DNA of 14,919 nt. Source: Amoeboaphelidium protococcarum X5 (taxonomy: Eukaryota; Fungi; Aphelidiomycota). The translations under genes and the position numbers were made by a program. The notes under the pieces were generated by a model. That model did no database searches. It was not told the origin of the DNA and worked only from the letters and a program-made list of their open reading frames with translations. The stretch spans positions 1-14,919 of the forward strand of contig JALDTO010000216.1 in the NCBI GenBank assembly GCA_023515725.1, written 5' to 3'. Shown in pieces: positions 1-14,919 of the stretch; positions within the stretch are counted from its first letter, which is position 1; each line of letters opens with the position of its first letter.

Positions 1-468
1 GAAAGATTGCAGGCACCAGAGTTCTTTGATGGTCATAGAAAATCCATTACATAGCTGGTATCACCTCCAAACTCTGCGCAATAAGTGTAGTAGCATTAAT
101 TGGCATAGCGATAGGAAATGCAGTATGGTGTACCATTGAAGCGTCAGTCAATACACATCCAAACGACGTCTTCTGTCAATGATGGCATTGACCATGCTAG
201 TAAGAAGCTACGATTGTCGCCATTGAATGAGTAAAACTTTGAAGTGTTACGTTAGCAATCTAAGAACTAGCAATAGCAATAAATGTCACCTGTAAAGGAG
301 TATGATGAATAGCTGTAGCAGCATCTCTAATCCCAATAAATGGAGTAGTAGAATAACGCGTCTATTAAATTGGCACCTTTGAAAAACTTGAGCCCTGAGG
401 GACAACCCGCTGATATGTAGCAGTAGAATGTGATGGAGCGAGTAAGAACTAGCGAACATGCTGTATGA
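1..468 (+). CDS. 3' end of an unknown Gln-rich, low-complexity protein (partial, 155 codons visible)
   Basis: Frame +1 is free of TGA from position 1 to TGA 466-468. It has 20 TAA/TAG codons mixed with 12 CAA/CAG codons in Q-runs (e.g. AAC TAG CAA TAG CAA TAA ATG = NQQQQQM). AT-rich sequence follows the stop. No recognisable domain. Confidence 0.8.
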
Positions 469-703
469 CTCTGAAATAAGTTAATAATTGAGCTTTTGTA
501 ATTTAATAATAGTATATGACTTGACTTTCGCTTCTTCCATACCCCTTAAGTAGGCCGCCACTCATTCACGCCAACTTTCAACAGGGACAAGTAACGCTGC
601 GAGCCCCGCGTAGGCGATCGCTGTACCAAAACTGTAAAAGCTTGTAGACAAAAATTTTCATGATTTATATTAGATAAGTGTTCTCTCTCATAACGAATTC
701 ATA

Positions 704-1550
704 ATGATTCTTTTAATTCTTGGCAAGGAGAATCTTAATCTTGAGGATTACGTTTAATCATGGTAGATCGTACTGATCGTCCTGCTCTCCCTCGCCAACC
801 TTTTGCAATCTATATCTCATCTACCGTAAGAATTTTGTAATGACCAAATGTATGACATTCAATTACTCCATGTGTAGATAGCTTATTGTGAATTTAAAAT
901 CAAAGAGCTCTCAGGCCTTGTCAGATGGATTCCTTTTCTTTGGATTGATTCATGGCATCTCGCTCTGTTGTTGGTAAGGCTTGAGATCTGGCTTTAATAT
1001 CTACCTGCTTGCGCCGATAATTTATACATTTTTCGCGGGGGCTCTTGCTTCGTAGAGAATATATCATTAATTTCCTAGTGTACCAAGTCTTAAGAGTAAG
1101 TCTAATGGGAAATTGTTTAACTCGCTGGCCGCGGAATAGTTGGTGTAAGTTGTGCCAAAGTACGTAATGCAGTACTTTGCGCTTATCATTGCGTGCTACT
1201 CTGCTCTGATTTTGCGCCTCGACGGTACTTTCGTCACTCTTTTTGTTTATCTTCCGACGCTGACTATGCTGCAATTTTATCATCAAGTCAAGTATATCAG
1301 GTTATCTGGACCAGAATTGAACGCGTCGAGGATGATTTACATTCTGACATTCGCATCAAATTTACTATCGCTGGCAGCTCTCATAGTAGTCACGTCACTG
1401 CGACCTTCAATGCTTTGCATCATATGCTGGGTCTTATTCAGTTTGAATCTGCTCCCGCCTTTGCTATCATCTATCATTATTCTGCGTTAACTCCATATTG
1501 TTGACAAAGGGCGTTACGATTTGATGCGCGAAGAGTTAATCACGCATTGA
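704..1550 (+). CDS. PQ-loop repeat (PQLC/cystinosin-like) multi-pass membrane protein, join(704..825,878..1550), 264 aa
   Basis: With TAR=Gln and a 52-nt intron it reads MILLILGKENLNLEDYVQSWQIVLIVLLSLANLLQSISHLPQLIVNLKSKSSQALSDGFLFFGLIHG, matching the PQ-loop pattern TM-LPQ-x3-N-x3-KS-x-(G/A)LS. Several more hydrophobic segments follow, including track ORF 1152..1490. Ends at TGA 1548-1550. Confidence 0.75.
826..877 (+). other. Spliceosomal intron, 52 nt, phase 2
   Basis: GTAAGA...TGTGTAG. Removal gives CC|A TAG = Pro-Gln of the PQ motif and joins two otherwise out-of-frame coding segments. Confidence 0.8.
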
Positions 1551-1653
1551 AACAATATTTAACAAAAATTATAATTGAAACATGATGGTCATGACTAATA
1601 TTAAAATCAACTTACCAAATTAATCAATTAATTACATCATTAAATATTCACTT

Positions 1654-2604
1654 TCAAATAAACTCGCCCTAACGAATCCAAACATTAAGTCCGTACTTTT
1701 CAGCATTGCCAATAATTGGACTACCACCGTGCTAAGTGGCACGATCTTCAACCTAGTTATCATCAGTATTGTACCAGAAGGCGGCATCTCCCACAACAGC
1801 AGGAACATCCACGTTGATTTGGGGGAAAGATGTTGCTCCTCCGTGCTTCTCCATGTCAACAGTGTTCAAGTAAGCGAAAATGGTGATTTCTCTCTGCCCA
1901 CCGCGCTTCAGCTCTTAATCTGCGCCAGGGAATGCAACATCAAACCAATCGTAATGGGGCTTATATTGCTGGCCTTCGCGATACCATACCACTTGCAATG
2001 GCTCGATATTATGCACAGGCTTATCAACAAACATTGAGATTCTCTCCTCAATGCACTTCACAACCTTGTCGTGTGACCTTTCCAAGTGAGCACTTGAACT
2101 AGTTCTGATTTCCGATATTCTCGTATCATCACTATCAGATACGATTGTGCTCCTTTTAAACAATGGTCTGGCTGCCTCAATCAAGTGCTGAGACTCACCG
2201 CGCGTCAGTATCTTGCTCAGGTACATCATGAAAGGCTTACGACGCATTATGTTGACACCAAATTTGTAATTGCGATCGCACACATACTAATCCATGAACA
2301 CGGTATCATTGAAAGATCCGTCAGCATTCCAACTACCCAAAGGATCTACTACGCCTTGAATCTCAGCTAGCTGCTCTGAATGGGCACTCTGCATGATTTT
2401 AGCAAGCTCCACCTAAGCGCGACGATTTAGCCATTGAGGTAAATGATAATAGTGAGCAGCAAAGGTCAGAATGAGAGCTAGAATGGCAACAGCGATATAT
2501 CCAGAAGACCAACCACGTCTCGTAGTCTTTGTTTCAACGCGTAACGACTAAGGCAAGCTATCATGTTTATTAACAGACTTGGATCGTGATCTTAATTTTC
2601 CCAT
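1654..2604 (-). CDS. Prolyl 4-hydroxylase (Fe(II)/2-oxoglutarate dioxygenase), type II membrane-anchored, copy 1, 316 aa
   Basis: ATG 2604 to TGA 1654-1656 is uninterrupted with TAR=Gln. N-terminal TM (YIAVAILALILTFAAHYY). Motifs include RTSSSAHL, EPLQVVWYREGQQYKPHYDWF (HxD), GGQREITIFAYLN, GGATSFP, GDAAFWYN, HGGSPII (distal His) and EKYGLNVWIR (2OG-binding Lys). Confidence 0.92.
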
Positions 2605-3011
2605 AATTTTATAAAGTGTTACGCGTGTAAATATAGGCAAAGTAATCAAAAAGTCAAACAATACAGAATGGATAAAAAGATGGTGGATGATCGAGAGTCA
2701 CCGCGATCAGTCTGTAATCACTAGACGCTATCTGATTGGATGACCTTGGGTGTTTGACTTGGCAAAAATGAAGAGCGGCTGTATGGACTGATGATATTAA
2801 ACAGTGAGCACTTTGCATCTGAAGTGTTGTACATAGAAAAGCTATTAGTGTTAGTGCAGTTGTTTGGTACTGGTTTTGCTGATGTAACTTCATTTGACAT
2901 TAAGTTAAATAAAGGTCTTTGTCTGTAATAAAACACGGCGACAATCTTATAATGACTGAAAATCAGAGCTAATAGAATTTTGATGCTCAAGACTACGATT
3001 AATAAAATTAA

Positions 3012-4094
3012 ATGGAAGAGGCAGTTTAAGTAAATTATGCTGCCTAGACTAAATCTTTGAATAATGGGCGCTCTAGAATGTAGAGGAAGAAATTATAATA
3101 GTATTATCTGCGATAAAGCGCGATACAATCTGGAATGCAAGATGTCGATCTATTGCAAAGGGGCGAATTAACTGTAGATTCTACAGAGGAAGATGCTCTG
3201 GCAAGGAGGGCTTTGATTCTGAGTTTCGCTGCCAACATTGTCTTGTTGGGTGTCAGAGTTGCCGTTGCAGTGCTCTCTGGATCGCTGTCTTTGATTGTTG
3301 CTCTGATGGATGCAGTGCTGGACGTGTTATCTAGTTCATTCATGTTTTGGGCTGCAAAGTAAGCTAATTCAGTGGACATTTATCGATATCCAGTTGGGAA
3401 GCATCGCTATGAGTCACTTGGAGTTGTTATATTCAGCACCATTATGGGAACCGCTGCTTTCACTTTAATCGTCGAAGGTGTGCGATAGTTGATTGAGCCT
3501 CACGATGGTCTGACCGAGACTTTAAATAGTCAATGGCTCGTTGTCGGCTTCACTATCTTTGTGGTCGCCTTCAAATTTCTGTTGTATCTCTACTGTCGAA
3601 GGTCAAGAAGTGCAGCGGTTTAGGCATTTGCCACAGATCATTTGAACGATGTGTTTGTCAATTCATTATCCCTTGTCGGTGCTCTGTTAGGCGCGTATGT
3701 CGCGTGGTAAGCTGATCCTAGTATAGCTATTGCTTTGGCTTGTTACGTTCTATTCAGCTGGAGTAGGCAAGCATATGGGCAGGTTCGATCTCTGGTGGGT
3801 ATCGCTGCACCGCACGAGTTTTTGCAAAAGCTCACATACTTGGCCACGGTGCATCATGCTGAGTAGATTGTGGCAGTGGATACTGTTCGTGCATACACAA
3901 TTGGCGAAATGTATCTGGCAGAGGTGGACATTGTTCTGCCTGGGGATATGACTCTGAAAGAAGCGCATGATATTGGAGAGGACTTGCAAATCAAAATTGA
4001 ATCACTTCCTGAGGTTGGTCGCGCCTTTGTGCATCTCGATTATGAAGGTACCCACAGACCAGAGCATTAAAACGCATTAAATAAATAAAACTGA
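3012..4094 (+). CDS. Cation diffusion facilitator, Mn-CDF (MTP8-11-like) metal transporter, 360 aa
   Basis: Single frame from ATG 3012 to TGA 4092-4094. Motifs include [16 protein letters not shown] (TM2 DxxxD), [23 protein letters not shown] (TM5 DxxxD) and the C-terminal VDTVRAY...EVDIVLP...[35 protein letters not shown]. Confidence 0.93.
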
Positions 4095-4153
4095 AAGCAG
4101 ATTAATGAATTTAAATGGTGTATATTAAATATAATGATTTTTACTATGTAATT

Positions 4154-5335
4154 TCACCATAAATATCTACTCTACTTGATGTTATCTGGTGTATGTAAAT
4201 CGCGTAATGTATCGCACAGATCTTGTACCAGAGGATCCTGAGAGCTCTCAACGTTGAACAAACCAGATTGAGCCTAAGCCAATCTCTAGCTTCTCTCCTG
4301 CCTTTGCTTCAGCTCCAAGTTAACCCGATCGGTACTGTAATCTTGATCAGTGTAGAGAAGTGATGGAAAAGTCGAGATTCTATGGCTATCCGCGGATGAT
4401 TCCACATCGGCATTATCTGCATCACTTTATGCATCTTCGAAATCAGAGTTCTCTGCTTCAGCCTTAACATCTTTAATAGATTGGAGGTGATTAGTCTCAT
4501 CTTGCATACTCGGTCTCTAGTAGTGGACCCAAACCTTGACCCCAACAACACCACTTCTCAGCAAAACTTTACTGAATCCATAATCAATCAGAGCTGATGC
4601 ATCTTGCTTTGGGCATGATCCTAAGATAAGATCAGACTTGGAGGCCATCTCCTCACCTTTCGGACGACCACTTATACGCATACGCACTCCCAACACTGGC
4701 ATCTCAGTCATGCCAGGCTACAAAGCACGTCGCGGTAACTTTGACTCTTTGAGACCGGGTATCATTTTGGAAACCTTATCGAAAATCATAGTGGAACCGA
4801 CGCGTTTCTTCAACATCTCACACGCCACCTGGGCCATAATCTCAGCATTTCCTAAAGGTGAATCAAGCTGAATAATATCCAGCTTAGTTTTGACGCGTCC
4901 AGTACGCAAATTATCATCTCTGGCGCGCCCAGATGTACCAGGTGCTTAAAATTGACCAAATACCTTACTCAGCGATCCTTCAATCTAAGACCAGTTGATC
5001 TTCTGCGCATCTTTATCATTGTAAACGAATAGCCGTACCAAATTACCAGCGACTGCTCTATAAACCAGCGGTGTGGAGATATACACACTTTTCTCATGCA
5101 GGTATCCTTCAATAAACTACTTAAGCTTCAAATGCTATATATTGTATGATGCATAATGAGCACTCATCGACGCGCCTTCAAGCGGAACGAACATGTTGTT
5201 GTAAAATGGACGCGCGTAATTTCTATCAATAGGGATATTACTCTATTAATTAAGGCGCATTATTATAGGATTCTTTTCCTAAGATGCCCATCTTATTGAC
5301 TAGATTACTCGCACAGCAGATATCTACTTGTTCAT
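4154..5335 (-). CDS. rps3: Mitochondrial/bacterial-type ribosomal protein S3 (uS3m), nucleus-encoded, 393 aa
   Basis: ATG 5335 to TGA 4154-4156 in one frame. The S3 C-terminal domain reads GVRMRISGRPKGEEMA...GSCPKQDASALIDYG...SGVVGVKVWV. The N-terminal SQEKNPIIMRL resembles the GQKxNPxxxRL start of bacterial/organellar S3 and is preceded by a short presequence-like peptide. Confidence 0.85.
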
Positions 5336-5557
5336 TGTAAGACGACTTGATAATGGTTTGATATCGTAGCCCAATAAATAAGAAAGTCTGATGAATTAAA
5401 GAACCAGCGATAGAATCTTGCAGAGAATCTCACTCGGTGCAATTTAAAGAAACTCGCTGATAGAAAATCAAAAACTATACACTTATCAGTAATACTACAA
5501 TTAAATTAACCTGTATTCAACATCAATTACATTTACTTGGGGAAAAATTCAAATCAT

Positions 5558-6487
5558 TCAGTCAAAGGAGCCTTGGCGAATCCAAATATTTAATCCAAAC
5601 TTCTCACCATCGCCAATAATAGGACTTCCGCCGTGCTTGGTCAGAGGATCTTCCTTCTGATCAGCATCAGTGTTAAACCAGAACGCAGCATCACCCAGTC
5701 TTGCAGGGACATCGACATCAATCTCTGGGAAAGAAGTAGCACCACCGTGTTTCTCCATATCGACAGTGTTTAAATAGGCAAAGATGGTGATTTCTCTCTA
5801 ACCACCGCGAGTCAGCTCATTGTCACCTCCAGAGCCATCGCGTTCGAACCAGTCATAGTGAGGCTCATACTTTTAACCTTCGCGGTACCAGACAACCTGC
5901 AATGGTTCAATATTTGGGACAGGCTTATTGACAAATCGAGATACACGCTACTCAATACACTTGACCACCTTATCGTGAGATCTCTGTAGGAAGGCACTAT
6001 GGCTAGTACGACCTTCATGCACATAATTCTCATCACCGACGACAGTGCTGCGAACAAACAGCGGTCTTGCGACTTCAATCAAATGCTGCGCTTCACCAGG
6101 AGTCAACAAATCGCGCAAGTACATCATGAATGGCTTACGGCGCATCAGATTGACACCGAAAGTAAAATTCTCGTTACACTTGTATCTGTGAGTGAACACC
6201 AGATCATTAAAAGAGCCATCATCATTCCAACTGCCAACAGGATCAACAAGAGCAGTCATTGACGTAGCTGTTTCAGGCGCAGCATAGAGAGCCAGTTTAG
6301 CCAACTGCAACTTGACATTTCTACTAATCGCCTGAGGGATCTAGTAGTAATTCACCATGGTCATCAGAGCGAATACAGCCACTGCAGTGTAGATATAGCC
6401 AGCGAAATTTCTCCAGAAGCCACCTTAGTTGGCAGCATAGGCCACAGAGACACCAGGCGACTATGAGCGTGATCTTGATCTTCCCAT
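5558..6487 (-). CDS. Prolyl 4-hydroxylase, type II membrane-anchored, copy 2, 309 aa
   Basis: ATG 6487 to TGA 5558-5560. Collinear paralog of 1654..2604 (VDPxGSWNxDGSFND, FGVNxMRRKPFMMYL, EPLQVVWYREG, PHYDWF, GGQREITIFAYLN, HGGSPIIG, EKFGLNIWIRQG). Confidence 0.92.
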
Positions 6488-7185
6488 TTTTCTAAAATTT
6501 AAATGCTCAGATAATATTTAGAGAGTTGTCGCAGCAAAGTTATTTAAAATGTTAAATTTGAAAATGAAAAGTTATAGAGTTGCAAGTAATAATGTTATCG
6601 CTCAGAGAATTAAACCAATTAAAAGTAGCCGCTGTGATTGGTCAAGACTGTGAGGCTGAAATCTTCTAGTGAGATCGCTCTCTGGTTACATGAATCAAAA
6701 GTATCTAGTCTGATATTTCTGATATAGAGCAAATACCAGTCGCTGTATATGTGCATATGAATTTAAATTCAGTAGAATGTTGATTTAATGAATTGATCTT
6801 TTAATGAAAAGGAAGCGATTTCAGCCAGCGTGTTCATTTCAGGGATACTTAACGCGTACGTCAGCGATTATCGTCATTCACACCTTCCCATTTTACCAAA
6901 CAAGAAGTGCTACTATAAGTTGAGCTTTTATTACCAAATTTAAGTAGATTTAGGTTTTAAGCTTTTGTAATTAAGGGTTTTTAAATATTTTGCGTATGAC
7001 AAGTGATAAACGTTACTTACACAATGGTCAAGGAGAATATTGGGAGCGACAGAGTCTTAAAAATAGGCCTAGCCTCTTTCCATCTTATCTGCCCCAAGTA
7101 TACGCCCAGCCCATAATTACGTAATACAGACAGCAAATATAAACGCTATTGTTTATCACGATTATATAATTTATAAAATATATAA

Positions 7186-9777
7186 ATGAGCCTTAGATCT
7201 GCGATAATGGATATTGAAAGCTAACAGCACCCTGCTTCGGAGATTTATCATCATAAAAGTCGCTTCTCATTGCCGACAGGTCACCAGGACATGGTCAGAT
7301 CTGTAAGTGTCTCCCCTGAGCGGCCTGGAAAGCGGCCCACTGAGTCATATAGTGCTATATAATATTTTTCCCGATTAAAGGCCTCCATATAGCGATATGA
7401 TAAAGTATACATGCGCGGATGGCTTACTCCTATTCTGATGTCAGTCATTTGCTGTACTGTTTTCTGCTTGTCGTTATTTTTATCATCCATATCGATAGTC
7501 TACCGGTATCAATCTATATATCCTGGAAATGGAGTAATTGCTGGTGTCTGGATGCTGATATTAGAATATTATAGAGTGCAAAAGTCACGATAGGGAGTGA
7601 CAGTGAGAATGCGTAAACAATTAGATCGCAGATCACGGCTATATCAAGTAGTGTGCATCTCCTCTATGTTCATCACGTATTTCATTTATTACGCAGTGTC
7701 AACTGATCCGTTGTCGAGTATAATATTTTCAGCTATCTTATTCGGAGAAGCGGGTATCATTGTCGGAACTATGAGCTACGTAACTCACAAATTGTAGAAG
7801 AGCTATCGCCTCACAAGTCGCAGAGTGGCTTTTGCGTTGTTTTTGACTTTAGGCGTCGGTGCGACTATCAGTGCTCTGATTGCTGCGGCGTATCTGTCTT
7901 CTGGATCACAAGAGCCTTATGCATTCAGTTCTTATTTTGGTCGATGGCTTCTGAGTGATTCTCTAATCAAGCTGATTGTGATACCGTTCATCCTATCGCT
8001 GGACTTTTCTCTAGTGACCATTTAGAATATACGTGTATATAAGTGGCGAATTTTGCAAGTTTTGGTCTATTGTGCTTGTACTGTTTGTATGCAGATTTTC
8101 TTGCCTGCGCTTCTGGCATAGAATGCTCTGTTCTAAGGCAGAGTCAACAGCGATTTTGCTATATATGTTTCCTTTCCACTGGTTTTGGTTTGTGGTTCAT
8201 TGATGGGCAGTTTTGGATCTACGCTTGCGATCCTGGCACTCACTGTCAGTTTGGTTAATTAGCTTGGTGATCCTTCTATATATTATTCAGGTATGCGTCT
8301 CTTGGATATTCCCGGTTTCCGTTTGATTGCTAGAATGCAAATCTTTATCGTAATAATTCTGCTCACTACTACAGCTTTTAACATTACACAGTTTGAGAAG
8401 AATGAAGCTCTCTAACAAGCTCTAGAGTCAAAATTGATGGCGGAATAGACTAATAAGATGAAGACGATGTTCATGTCATTTCTCTGTCATGAACTGCGTA
8501 ATCCTCTCCATGCAATCACTAACATTATAGAGTTTATGAAGGAGGATTCTGGTATCCAACAAAAGGAGTAACTAGAAGAGGGTCTGATGTAATCTGCTAA
8601 TTATATGAGTCGCCTCATAAATGATGTACTTGATTCTGGAAAGTTTGAAGCTGGCAAAGTGACCTTAGAAAGTCTTCCCGTGGATGTAAAGTCCATAACG
8701 CGGCACATTATCCGACCTATGGAAGAATTGGTGAAGAAGAAGTCTATTACCTTTTAGACTTGTATAGACGACACCTTACCTGATGAAGTCATGCTTGACT
8801 CCATGCGATATCAGTAAATCATTTAAAATTTGCTCTCCAATGCTTACAAGTTTACGCCCGTTGGTGGTGAAATATCATTTTCTTTGAAATTGATGAATGA
8901 AATGAGTAGAGACGTCGATGACCTTGGCACCAGAGTTCTCAGTATTAATGTCAAAGATTCTGGAATTGGTCTATCTCCAGAATAATTGCAATACTTGTTT
9001 GTGCCATACACGCAAGCATCGCTTTCTACAACTAGATAATACGGAGGAACCGGGCTCGGTCTGTCAATCATTCAGCAAATCGTTGATTTGATGCGTGGAT
9101 CCATCAACGTTGACAGTTCTCCTGGCATGGGCACAAGTTTTACTATCAACCTTCCGCTTGCTGTTGAATCTGCTGTGGATGTTCCTGATGATGCGATGCT
9201 TTAGTAATCTGAAAATCTGCAAATGTAGAGTCAGGCGGCATAATGGATTTAGGATGTTTCAAAAAGCGATTCTGCTTAAATACCTGTTACACTTACAAAT
9301 AGTCATATAGTAAATGATACTCCATAGCCTATTTTGGAGCCATCACCTTAGACTGCACCTAGCATTATCACGCCTCCTAAACCGGTTCGAGCTCTTGTTG
9401 TCGATGACGCTGGCATAAATCGAATGATTTTACAGAAGCAATTGCAGTAATTGGGCGTTCAAGACGTGGTGGCTTGTGAAAATGGCCTGGAAGCGTGCGA
9501 TCAATTGAAGAATGCTCATTTTGACATCGTATTTCTGGATCTACACATGCCAGTTATGGATGGATCTGAAGCTATTAAAGTGATCAGAGATGAGCTCCAT
9601 CTAGGAAAAGATATTCTCCCTGTAGTGGCTGTTACCGGAAACCATGTCACAGACACAGAGTCTGCTAGCAAGTTCAACTTAGAAGCGTTCAATCAAATCG
9701 CGTCCAAGCCGTTCCGTAAAGAGGATTGCCGTAAAATTTTGGTACAGTACAACCTGATTTCCCAAGGTACAGTCTGA
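7186..9777 (+). CDS. Hybrid sensor histidine kinase 1: multi-TM MASE1-like sensor, HisKA, HATPase_c, receiver; 863 aa from ATG 7186
   Basis: Frame +1 has no TGA until 9775-9777. About 8 hydrophobic segments. H-box [10 protein letters not shown] (His 8488-8490), N-box [18 protein letters not shown]1 DSGIG, G2 GGTGLGL. Receiver LVVDD...[11 protein letters not shown] (Asp 9538-9540)...VAVTG...KPF. The start is uncertain because an upstream exon is possible. Confidence 0.93.
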
Positions 9778-10083
9778 TGTGAATAAATTAACAATGAATT
9801 AGATTTAAAATAAAATAAAATTGATTATGTTTGAATTTAAAATTTGACTTTTAACCACAGTACCTGATGTGTCTATCCTCGCAGTTTAAATCTCCGATGA
9901 TCCAATCTGAGGGATCGGCGATTGACTCATCGGCCGGCGATGAATCACAATTGGGGGGCAGCGTTGGTGTAAAAGATCGCATGCACATTCATCAACCGAA
10001 ATGAGTAAAAGTAAATTCTACACGGAGGTTCACAGATATTCATTCATCTCGATTGTTGACTGCTTGTATTATTATCGCCCAAA

Positions 10084-12900
10084 ATGCTACTAAATGACGA
10101 CGAAGAAAGGCAGAGTTGCCGCACCTATGAGATCAATGGATCGGCAGCTGTCCTCACTGAATCTAGTGGTGGACAGACATAATAGCAGTAGTAGTAAATT
10201 CCTCTCAAGCAGATCAATATGAAGCATGATTGTATCATCTCCGATACGTCATTACGCAATACAATGCCTAAATGGGAGGTGAAAATAAGAGAATGGTAAA
10301 GAAGATACCATGCTGCCGATGCAAGGTGTTACTACTGGCTAAATCCATTCGTGGTGGCTGTAATTTCTGCGTTCTTCTTTGTACTGCTCTCCGTAATGGC
10401 ATCCTATTTTTTATTTCATCAGTTCAATTACTCCTTCCCGATAAATGCCGTCATTAGTGCCAGCTGGCTGAAGATTAGAGAAGTATTTCTGCGGGCGGAG
10501 CTGCGTGCCACAACGGATCTTGAGAAGAAGTAGATTCGGAATCGTGGCTATCGAACACAAGGTCTCTCGATTTTGTTTATGCTCGTGGCTTTTTACATTA
10601 ATTTGTCTCTGTATAACCTATGGTATATATCTTTATTTTATACGCTGCTCATATTTTTGGAGGATGTTGGTATTGTGCTCAGTGTTATTTACATTGGATG
10701 TCCTAAGATTAATGGGCGCCGCACATATGCTAAATTGACGTGTCGCCGTACTTGCATTACGCTATTAATCTCGGTGCTAGTCTCGGTGGGTATTGTCGCT
10801 GTCCTGATTGCAGTGACAGTTTTATATATAAGAGGATACTCAAATGCGAGTGTCGGCGTAATTATTGGGCAGTGGACATCATACGACTCTCTATTCAAGC
10901 TGATTGTTATTCCATTCGTTTTATCTATCCACTTTTCCATAAAGACAATCAAGAAATTTAAGACTTATAAAATAAGGGCTCTGCTATTGCTATTAAACTG
11001 CACTTTCATCATTCTGATGTAGTATTATCTTCCTAGCCTCTTGTAGTAAGCTGGATTGTTCACTGGGCGTTCTGCTTACGATGCCGCAGAGTATCTGTCA
11101 TTCCCATTCATAATCTTTAGTGGATTTTTGATGCAGAATTTTGGATCATCGTTATCGATTCTAGTCCTAGCTATCACCGCCGCGTCTAATACTATTTATG
11201 GCGAAGATGGATAATCATAGCAGTCTCCTTCTCAACGGCGTCTATCAGATTTTCAAATCTAGAATTTGATACGACTGCAGATCTTTCTATTTGTGATGAT
11301 CGTCACTAGTATGACATTCGATATAATTCAGTATGAGAAAGCGCGTGCTTTAAAGCGTGCAATTGATGCTAAACTGGCCCAGGAGAAGGCCAATGTTTAA
11401 AAGTCTATTTTTATGAGCTTTCTCTGTCATGAACTGAGAAATCCACTTCATTCGATTACAAATATGGTCTAGTTTTTGGAAGAAGATTGTACTAGTCCCT
11501 CCAACGGTGGCCCGTCTTTCAATCAATAGATCGTGCACGGCGATCAGGTTAAGGAGAAGAGAGAGATTACAGACGCTATCAGTATCGCTGCCAAGTATAT
11601 GTCTGATTTGATTAATGACGTGTTGGACACTGGCAAGTTTGAAGCTGGTAAAGTTAGACTCGAAAAGCTGCCTGCTAATGTAAAACAGATCTTGACCTCC
11701 ATTCTAGTGCCTATAAAAGAGCAAGTGCGGGCGAAGAATATCTCTCTAAGCGTTTGCATATCTGATGCCATTCCGGATTATTTAGAGACTGACTCCACTA
11801 GATTTTAGTAAATTATATCTAATCTTCTATCTAATGCTTATAAATTCACTGCTCCTGGTGGTAAGATTACTTGCTAAATGTATTGTCTCACTCCGTCAAA
11901 GTAGTACGATCAAAAATTGCCTGCTGATGCTTTCAGAGATCTGCACATCAAAGTGATTGATACGGGTATTGGAATGTCTCAAGAAACGTTGGATAATCTC
12001 TTTGTGCCGTATGTGCAAGCATCCGTGTCCACCTCGCGAGAATATGGCGGTAGTGGGTTGGGAATGTCTATAATTAAACAGATCATTGATCTAATGAACG
12101 GAAGTATATCTATTTCCAGTGAAGAAGGAGTTGGGTCGTGTTTTAGTGTTGTTATTCCTCTAAAAATAGCCAGCCCACCACCTTCACTTGACACGTTACG
12201 CAACAAGATGTCTACTATCAATATGTAGGATGTATGTATGAGCCCATTACCTTCTGCTTAAGAGATTGAGTTGAAGCCTCTGCAAAAATTAAAGACTGAG
12301 ATTCCTACAAGTCCATTGCCTTAGATATAGTCGTCTGATCTCGTGGTGACCAACTCTAATAAAGCTGTAGATGGTAATGACACTGCACCTGTCTTATAGC
12401 CGCGCAGTAGCTCAACATTAACACCGGCTTAATCTGCGAATGTGTTATTTCAGGACTAGGTGTAGCCTGACTAAAAGTAATAGGTGAAATTGGTCGTGGT
12501 TGATGATTCATTGATAAACCGCAAGATTATGGTGAAAATGTTGAATTCCTTAGGATTCAAGAATATAGATCAGTATGAGAATGGCCTAGAGGTTTGTAAT
12601 GCTCTCGAAATAGATTCAAATGTAGCCTTGGTCTTTATGGATCTACTGATGCCTGTCATGGATGGATCTGAAGCTGTTCTGCGAATACGTAATAATCTTC
12701 ATCTGGACAAGTAGAAGCTACCCGTTGTAGCGGTGACTGGAAACTTCATTGCCTCATCTTAGACTAATGGTAATGGAGATGGCGTCGCGGATGATGGCAG
12801 TCAAGTTGATTAGGGATTAAAAGAGTTCAATTTGATAGTTGGCAAGCCTTTCGTCAAGGCTGATTGTGTTAAAGTAATGGAGAAGTTTAATCTGCTTTGA
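10084..12900 (+). CDS. Hybrid sensor histidine kinase 2, same architecture, 938 aa
   Basis: First ATG after the in-frame TGA at 10057, open to TGA 12898-12900. TM region is homologous to HK1 (DSLFKLIVIPFVLS vs [14 protein letters not shown]). H-box [10 protein letters not shown] (His 11428-11430), [28 protein letters not shown]. Receiver VVVDD...FMDLLMPVMDG (Asp 12640-12642)...KPF. Confidence 0.93.
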
Positions 12901-13199
12901 CCCATACGCGTTAATTGGGCTCTTCTTTACCATGAATATGTTTGCCTCACACGATAAAAGAATAAATGCATTTTGTTTAGGTACATCTATAATTAATATT
13001 TATCCATCTTTGATTCTATTATTATCGCTGATGATGCTTATGTCAGTAATCTCTTCTAATCGCTTCGATGACCCCTCTTACGTCAATTATAGTTATTGCG
13101 CTTGCTGTTGCGATATCCTTTTATCTCAACTAATATTAAAGAGATATTCTTTCATATTTTAGTAGCAACTAGAATAATCAGCATTAATTAAAAGAAGCG

Positions 13200-14147
13200 A
13201 TGACATCAAGAAAAGTACTAAAGGCTATATTGAGCCGTGAGCAGGGTGAAGGTGTTGGCGCCAAGGTTCGTCGATCTATTGGACGCCCAGAGTTGCGTAA
13301 CTTTGATCCCTTCCTGATGCTGGATGAATTCTCAGTTGGTCCGCCAAGTGGTTTTCCAGACCATCCACATCGTAAGTTGTTCTTACTTAGCAATTTTTAA
13401 TTAATCATCATATATTTAACGTATTTTAGTGTAGGTGGATTTGAAACAGTCACGTATTTGCTGAGTGGTCGATTCGCGCACGAGGACTTTGCCGGGCATA
13501 AGGGTGAAATTGGTCCTGGTGATTTGTAATGGATGACAGCTGGCAGAGGTATTGTGCATGCTGAGATGCCATTGCAACAGTCTCATGGCCTCCAATTGTG
13601 GGTCAACCTGCCCAAGGTTGAGAAGATGTGTGAGCCGCGTTATCAAGAACTGAAAGCTAAGCAGATTCCTTCAGCATTTCCGTTTGGCCCTGATAGTAAA
13701 GTGGAAATCAAAGTGATAGCAGGCGAAAGTTTTGGAGTCAGTAGTCCAGTGTATACAAAGACTCCTGTGTACTATTTGGATGTTCAGGTTAAGGATGGGG
13801 CCGCTGAATCGTTTGTGTAGCAACTACCGCCTGGATGGAATTCATTCATTTACACGCTGACTGGTAAAATCAAAGTTGGTGAGAATGAGACTGTATGCGA
13901 ACCTCATAACACCGTGGTACTCAGTAATGAGGAAGGCCAGACTTGCGTCAAATTTACTCCGACAGGCGAGGCAGCCCATTTCGTAGTCATTGCTGGCAAA
14001 CCTCTGAATGAACCCGTTGTGCAGCATGGTCCATTCGTGATGACTACTTAACAGGAGATTCAAGAGACGTTTGTTGATTATCAGTACGGGCGTAATGGGT
14101 TTGAACGCGCACCTTCCTTCAAAAGTTCCATATCAAAGTCACACTGA
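13200..14147 (+). CDS. Pirin (bicupin iron-binding protein), join(13200..13371,13435..14147), 294 aa
   Basis: Motifs EQGEGVGAKVRRSIG, DPFLMLDEF, GFPDHPHRGFETVTY (across the intron), GDLQWMTAGRGIVHAEMP, GLQLWVNLP and EPVVQHGPFVM. Ends at TGA 14145-14147. Confidence 0.95.
13372..13434 (+). other. Spliceosomal intron, 63 nt, phase 1
   Basis: GTAAGT...GTGTAG, AT-rich. Removal restores the conserved pirin HPHR-GFETVTY motif. Confidence 0.92.
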
Positions 14148-14444
14148 TATTATTGCACTTTGGTAGGTGATTGATCATAAGATGAATATGAATAAAGCAT
14201 TTAAACCGCTTATTGACAAATTTAGTACTTTACTCTTACACATTGTCTTTTTAAAACGCGCCCTGAACAGTCAAGATGTTTTGTACCGTTAAATGTTTCA
14301 GCCCATTCATTCATTATACGAAACGGGGTGTCTCTTTCTGACCAGTTCCGCCGCATCGTGCTGTTGATGTGAAACGGCCGCGGTTTCTCTTTTGTTGAAA
14401 CAGCATCGACCAAAACGTTGTGACAATTCCCCATTGCTCTTTGT

Positions 14445-14464
14445 CCTTCCTTCCTTCCTTCCTT
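14445..14464 (+). repeat. (CCTT)5 microsatellite / pyrimidine tract
   Basis: Five perfect CCTT units about 90 nt upstream of the last gene. Confidence 0.85.
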
Positions 14465-14549
14465 GTACTGAAACTGTTACTTGAATTGTATTTTTCATAA
14501 CGTTATATCTATAACTACTACTACTTCCTATTATCTAATTAATTATTGA

Positions 14550-14919
14550 ATGAGAATGCCTACCAGACGTGGTAAGTATTGTTACAATTTCGTTTTAATA
14601 TTGATATAGGCTCCCGCAAACGGACTAATGTAGCTAGAGAAGAGGTTGAGGCTGTTGAGGCCCAGAATGCTGTTGGTCAAGTATCTCCTGCAAAGAAGGG
14701 ACGTAAAGCTGCTGCTGCTGCTGCTTCCCTTGGTTCTTCTCCAGCTGCCAAGAAGCAGAAGGCAGAGGCTCTGCCACAGTCTCCAGAGAAGAAGCAAAAG
14801 AAGACCCCGGCAAAGAAGGATGCTCGTGAGGCTGGAGCTGCTTCAGAGTACAAGGAACAGTTTGGTTCAGTTATGAGTGAAATTGACCAGTTTGGCAACA
14901 AGATTCAGAGACAGGTACT
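14550..14919 (+). CDS. 5' part of a basic Lys/Ala-rich, probably nuclear or nucleolar protein, join(14550..14571,14610..>14919); possibly Rpf1/Brix-like
   Basis: Reads MRMPTRRGSRKRTNVAREEVEAVEAQNAVGQVSPAKKGRKAAAAAASLGSSPAAKKQK...SEIDQFGNKIQRQV (start at ATG 14550 or 14556). Has NLS-like basic clusters and S/T-P-x-K motifs. The terminal NKIQRQ only weakly recalls the Rpf1 N-terminal NKxKRQ motif. Confidence 0.75.
14572..14609 (+). other. Spliceosomal intron, 38 nt, phase 1
   Basis: GTAAGT...GATATAG, AT-rich. Joins the ATG exon in frame to the long open frame (G|GC = Gly). Confidence 0.8.
14708..14725 (+). repeat. (GCT)6 coding repeat, poly-Ala
   Basis: Six GCT codons in frame in the last gene. 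Confidence 0.85.

Follow-up and report, generated by a model that had tools for sequence, protein, structure and literature searches.

A 14,919-nucleotide stretch of DNA (hereafter the window) almost certainly belongs to the nuclear genome of Amoeboaphelidium protococcarum, an aphelid that parasitises algae, in which the codons TAA and TAG (together TAR) specify glutamine and TGA is the sole stop, as in NCBI translation table 6. The window, which is gene-dense and has a GC content of 40.9%, is identical to a sequence of the deposited A. protococcarum assembly, being the exact reverse complement of record JALDTO010000216.1 (GCA_023515725.1), and NCBI taxonomy places the genus Amoeboaphelidium in Aphelidiomycota. 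The reading of UAR as Gln is already known for this species, and there is nothing new in the code itself: passages in PMC5304391, PMC6299283 and PMC11687900 credit it to Karpov et al. 2013 (Protist 164:195), and PMC11687900 includes A. protococcarum among the listed known reassignment cases. The initial annotation, made from the sequence alone, had correctly counted this aphelid among the users of the code, but its suggestion that the code would be new if the source organism were not known to use it falls away, because the source is A. protococcarum and the reassignment was published in 2013.

The reassignment is apparent from the open frames and the codon content of the window. Under the standard code the longest open frame spans 163 codons, whereas reading TGA as the sole stop opens frames of 926 and about 946–947 codons; second-order Markov simulations (n = 200) gave a longest TGA-free frame of 304 codons on average and 512 at most. 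As the initial annotation had stated, the genes contain in-frame TAA and TAG and no internal TGA. Across the 4,022 codons of ten gene models there are 56 TAA, 83 TAG, 68 CAA, 66 CAG and 0 internal TGA codons, compared with the 65 TAA, 74 TAG and approximately 32 TGA expected from positional base frequencies. TAA and TAG thus occur at their expected rates while TGA is absent, so only TGA is excluded from the genes.

The substitutions observed between copies of the locus provide an annotation-free confirmation of the code. Three further copies were compared with the window, of which one (90.6% identical) lies in the same assembly and the others (95.3% and 96.5%) in GCA_023515745.1, yielding 4,021 aligned codons and 1,069 distinct alternative codons; the presence of multiple copies is consistent with the genome-wide duplications described for A. 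protococcarum (PMC10608142). First-position C/T swaps between CAR and TAR (CAA or CAG and TAA or TAG) occur at 45 of 273 sites (16.5%), which is indistinguishable from the rate for the synonymous Leu YTR codons (48/307, 15.6%; P=0.82) and far above that for six non-synonymous boxes (15/1120, 0–2% each; P=2e-21), bearing in mind that the copies are related and the swap sites therefore partly dependent, although the control boxes were drawn from the same alignments. TAR takes part in 96 distinct changes, of which 47 lead to CAR and 14 exchange TAA and TAG, the latter type of swap affecting 10% of sites, which is within the range for synonymous third-position changes. CAA/TAA and CAG/TAG swaps are equally frequent (18 each), while single-step changes to Glu or Lys codons number 2–4 each. 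No change involves TGA (0/1,069). When translated with table 6, the copies differ by 752 synonymous and 317 non-synonymous changes. Differences of the CAA/TAA type are also present in the read data of run X10, at positions 8416, 8983 and 8989.

The ten gene models (forward strand, +; reverse strand, −) are as follows.

g1, 1–468, +: 3' end of a gene of approximately 573 amino acids (aa), function unassigned; 6 TAA and 14 TAG, ending in TGA 466–468
g2, 704–1550, +: PQ-loop membrane protein of 264 aa, exons 704–825 and 878–1550; 5 TAA and 4 TAG
g3, 1654–2604, −: prolyl 4-hydroxylase-like 2OG-Fe(II) oxygenase of 316 aa; 1 TAA and 6 TAG
g4, 2952–4094, +: cation-diffusion-facilitator metal transporter, start uncertain (NCBI start 3012); 11 TAA and 7 TAG
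g5, 4154–5335, −: bacterial-type ribosomal protein S3; 3 TAA and 12 TAG
g6, 5558–6487, −: second prolyl 4-hydroxylase-like gene, 309 aa; 2 TAA and 4 TAG
g7, 7186–9777, +: membrane hybrid histidine kinase (HisKA, HATPase_c and receiver domains), 863 aa; 14 TAA and 13 TAG
g8, 10084–12900, +: second hybrid histidine kinase, 938 aa; 12 TAA and 22 TAG
g9, 13200–14147, +: pirin, 294 aa, exons 13200–13371 and 13435–14147; 2 TAA and 1 TAG
g10, 14550–14919, +: 5' part of a gene of approximately 323 aa, function unassigned, with a predicted intron at 14572–14609

Stop-free single-exon pieces or retrieved protein identifiers served as database queries, and joined models were used only for local counts and alignment. 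The Pfam run on stop-free pieces identified 2OG-Fe(II) oxygenase, cation-efflux transporter, ribosomal protein S3, pirin and kinase domains, together with a weak PQ-loop match (PF04193, E 0.029) in g2. A public 309-aa protein matches the g6 model and carries Gln at all six TAR positions; the cluster of the g6 product contains three proteins that carry the name 'hypothetical protein [Amoeboaphelidium protococcarum]', one of them from GCA_023515725.1, along with one protein from JALDTO010000216.1 itself. The NCBI models of the contig are equal in length to those presented here for g3, g6, g7, g8 and g9, and differ in that g1 and g2 are merged and that g4 and g5 start later.

Conserved positions in homologous proteins point to the same amino acid. 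The products of g3, g6, g7, g8 and g9 were each aligned to 57–81 non-aphelid homologues with Gln and TAR masked, loci from a metagenome scan for the kinase being reused as outgroup columns. Nineteen columns contain at least 50% Gln, and the window presents CAR at 9 of these, TAR at 5 and other codons at 5. The initial annotation had cited five internal codons, each of which is TAA or TAG as claimed, and had placed four of them at Gln residues conserved in the pirin, histidine kinase N-box and prolyl 4-hydroxylase families. The columns bear this out, with 98% Gln opposite the pirin TAA at 13527–13529 (which is CAA in one sister copy), 99% opposite each of the kinase N-box codons (TAA 8815–8817 and TAA 11809–11811) and 86% opposite TAG 5800–5798 of g6, where a further TAA (5875–5873) stands in an 85% Gln column. 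The fifth codon, TAG 879–881, had been assigned to the Gln of the PQ motif; this holds after splicing but not in the unspliced sequence, in which the Pro codon is split by the intron at 826–877, and the spliced g2 model agrees with the one that NCBI gives for the sister copy, also 264 aa long. Overall, enrichment is highest for Gln opposite both TAA (5.9-fold) and TAG (2.5-fold), the corresponding values for CAA and CAG being 6.4 and 4.6. Between the two prolyl 4-hydroxylase paralogues, Gln is the residue most commonly found opposite TAR (4/13), and TAG faces Gln at three sites. TAR faces Gln 3 times between the kinase paralogues, a comparison that is uninformative because g7 and g8 are too diverged. 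Together with the swaps described above, these columns show that both TAA and TAG serve as sense codons for Gln.

TGA is the only stop codon and is never used as a sense codon. All nine visible gene ends that the initial annotation had listed (466, 1548, 1654, 4092, 4154, 5558, 9775, 12898 and 14145) are TGA on the strands given there, an observation that is partly circular where the frames are themselves defined by TGA. Support of other kinds comes from the prolyl 4-hydroxylase homologues, most of which terminate 5 residues past a terminal N-x-W-I-R motif, the same spacing at which TGA ends g3 and g6, and from the retention of the terminal TGA in 24 of 24 comparisons with the other copies. 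In addition, position 9831, which lies 54 nt past the TGA of g7, is followed by a poly(A) tail.

A code in which TAR means Gln inside genes and also serves as a stop near mRNA 3' ends, or is incompletely read through, as in Condylostoma and Blastocrithidia, is very unlikely to apply here. Such a code could be accommodated to the extent that only the nine gene ends of the window were examined and that two genes contain few TAR, which make up 3 of the 16 Gln codons in g9 and 0 of the 9 in g10. None of the nine ends is TAR, however, and the TAR share shows no drop over the final 30 codons of genes (9/270, 3.3%, versus 130/3642, 3.6%, elsewhere; P=1.0); it occurs 2, 5, 6 and 8 codons ahead of TGA in g3, g4 and g5 (in g4 as TAA at 2 and 8), and both TAG 1671 of g3 and TAA 4068 of g4 are CAG in other copies. 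In the fetched loci, 11 of 11 further NCBI models that were checked also end in TGA, although these were called with table 6. The lack of TAR depletion at gene ends, the CAG swaps and the spacing of the prolyl 4-hydroxylase ends therefore favour the plain table 6 code. A related proposal is that the reassignment is incomplete, with UAA and UAG read as Gln less efficiently than CAA and CAG, some residual termination, and certain genes avoiding TAR. This is improbable. It would fit the uneven use of TAR: g10 has none among its 110 visible codons, and the TAR share of Gln codons is 3/25 in g9 and g10 together versus 136/248 in the other genes (Fisher P=3e-5 for a contrast chosen post hoc). The low TAR content of the pirin gene and g10 may reflect avoidance in some genes, and an incomplete reassignment, if true, would amount to a codon capture not yet completed in an organism closely related to Fungi.

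Several observations weigh against the assignment of Gln to both codons in this genome. TAG considered alone gives a modest column signal, with one strongly conserved column, and the pooled raw frequencies opposite it are similar for Gln (0.10), Ala (0.13) and Glu (0.10); the translation of TAR as Gln by NCBI follows the table that the depositors selected and carries no independent weight; a tRNA or eRF1 gene was found in neither the window nor the fetched loci, where no eRF1-directed search was made; and no peptide support for Gln at TAR was seen, the one metaproteome paper found making no mention of the code. The weak TAG signal is attributable to the location of most TAG sites in variable linkers, and the gap is covered by the copy-swap test. 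A 95% Ala column opposite TAG 12811 was treated as a misalignment in a receiver-domain insertion. The similar raw frequencies would also suit a code in which TAA and TAG differ in meaning, for example with Gln for one codon and Glu, Lys, Leu or a stop for its partner, as in Iotanema, the rhizarian exLh and some ciliates. Such a split is extremely unlikely, given that CAG/TAG swaps are as numerous as CAA/TAA swaps, against just 3 each for GAG/TAG and AAG/TAG, that TAA and TAG replace one another at a synonymous-like rate, and that TAG faces Gln at the three sites of the prolyl 4-hydroxylase paralogues and in the 86% Gln column. The probability that the genes obey the standard code and are pseudogenes, contain sequencing errors, or are restored by mRNA editing of UAR to CAR is close to nil. 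The absence of standard-code frames above 163 codons would fit this reading, but the genes lack internal TGA, the changes between copies are predominantly synonymous, and the same stretch is present in runs from several studies. Editing, which the initial annotation had named as a finding that would overturn its claim, was looked at in run X6, which has no library record, belongs to another study, is labelled as another organism and is not part of a matched DNA/RNA pair. X6 behaves as poly(A) RNA, in that it skips the pirin intron at 13372–13434 (GT..AG), shows a loose poly(A) end past 9831 and leaves intergenic bins empty. Its contig over 8299–9831 shows 3 differences across 18 TAR codons of g7, and over the whole stretch there are 18 T>C places in total with approximately 53 TAR codons covered. 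These differences are too few for the number of TAR codons, so the mRNA keeps UAR, and C-to-U or U-to-C editing is not the explanation; UAR is present in mature mRNA and editing is absent for g7.

With both TAR codons read as Gln, the decoding machinery may be predicted from better characterized systems. By analogy with ciliates and hexamitids, and as the initial annotation had proposed, UAA and UAG would be read by tRNA-Gln species with UUA and CUA anticodons, which could derive from tRNA-Gln(UUG/CUG), one mutation away (PMC5304391), and would be charged by glutaminyl-tRNA synthetase (PMC5304391). An eRF1 with an altered N-domain would presumably no longer recognise UAR (PMC5304391). TAA and TAG act as ordinary Gln codons that CAA and CAG can replace, and translation ends at TGA alone. 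ARAGORN and Rfam detected RNA genes neither in the window nor in the fetched loci L001–L003, and none of the papers searched characterises the decoding tRNAs, eRF1 or glutaminyl-tRNA synthetase of a fungal relative that uses table 6.

The code of the window is the same as that reported for this species by Karpov et al. 2013, and the NCBI models likewise read TAR as Gln. It is also shared with Tetrahymena, Paramecium, hexamitine diplomonads, Ulvophyceae and Streblomastix (PMC11687900, PMC5304391), from which the aphelid code differs in its independent origin, within Opisthokonta; the related aphelid Paraphelidium tribonemae retains the standard code (PMC6299283). Stop codons are likewise used as sense codons in Iotanema (UAG=Gln), the rhizarian exLh (UAG=Leu), Condylostoma and Blastocrithidia, but in contrast to these split or context-dependent codes, both TAR codons act as Gln here and are undepleted near gene ends. 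In practical terms, reading the genome with the standard code or with table 11 fragments its genes and gives them a pseudogene-like appearance.

The gene models of the locus vary between copies and annotations. The merged NCBI model on window positions 1–1550 joins the 3' end of g1 to the PQ-loop gene g2 in a product of 365 aa, whereas in the sister copy of the same assembly g1 and g2 are annotated as two genes; full-length NCBI models of g1 are present in the sister copies. NCBI does not call g2 in L001 and L003, although both contain its DNA, at 91% across the unspliced length. The prolyl 4-hydroxylase paralogues g3 and g6 lie 3 kb apart and share approximately 70% DNA identity across 680 bases.

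The ribosomal protein encoded by g5, a nuclear gene, contains domain PF00189 and finds its best PDB matches in 30S uS3. All four copies have an ATG 25 codons ahead of the NCBI start, and the N-terminal extension that begins there is basic and acid-poor, resembling a mitochondrial targeting peptide. These features suggest that g5 is probably the mitochondrial rps3 (uS3m) relocated to the nucleus. In many fungi rps3 remains in mitochondrial DNA.

The kinase genes g7 and g8 (7186–12900) form a tandem of membrane hybrid histidine kinases with hydrophobic multi-pass N-termini. The metagenome scan with the ATPase piece of g8 returned no aphelid-like match, the best being at approximately 55% identity. 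In L003:1856-6412 (GCA_023515745.1, JALECJ010000011.1), synteny breaks at approximately 4800, within the g8 kinase after HisKA (window 11696). Past the break lies a RIC1-family gene, and the NCBI model is a 1500-aa HisKA-RIC1 fusion. No N gap is present, and the junction may reflect either a genuine rearrangement or an assembly error.

The splice of g9 is visible in RNA contigs. Window positions 7000–14200 also occur in a biofilm metagenome from 2013, which contains 66% of the sampled words, in four RNA-like runs from 2021 that carry another organism label and possibly derive from infected host cultures, and in small shares in freshwater and sediment metagenomes.

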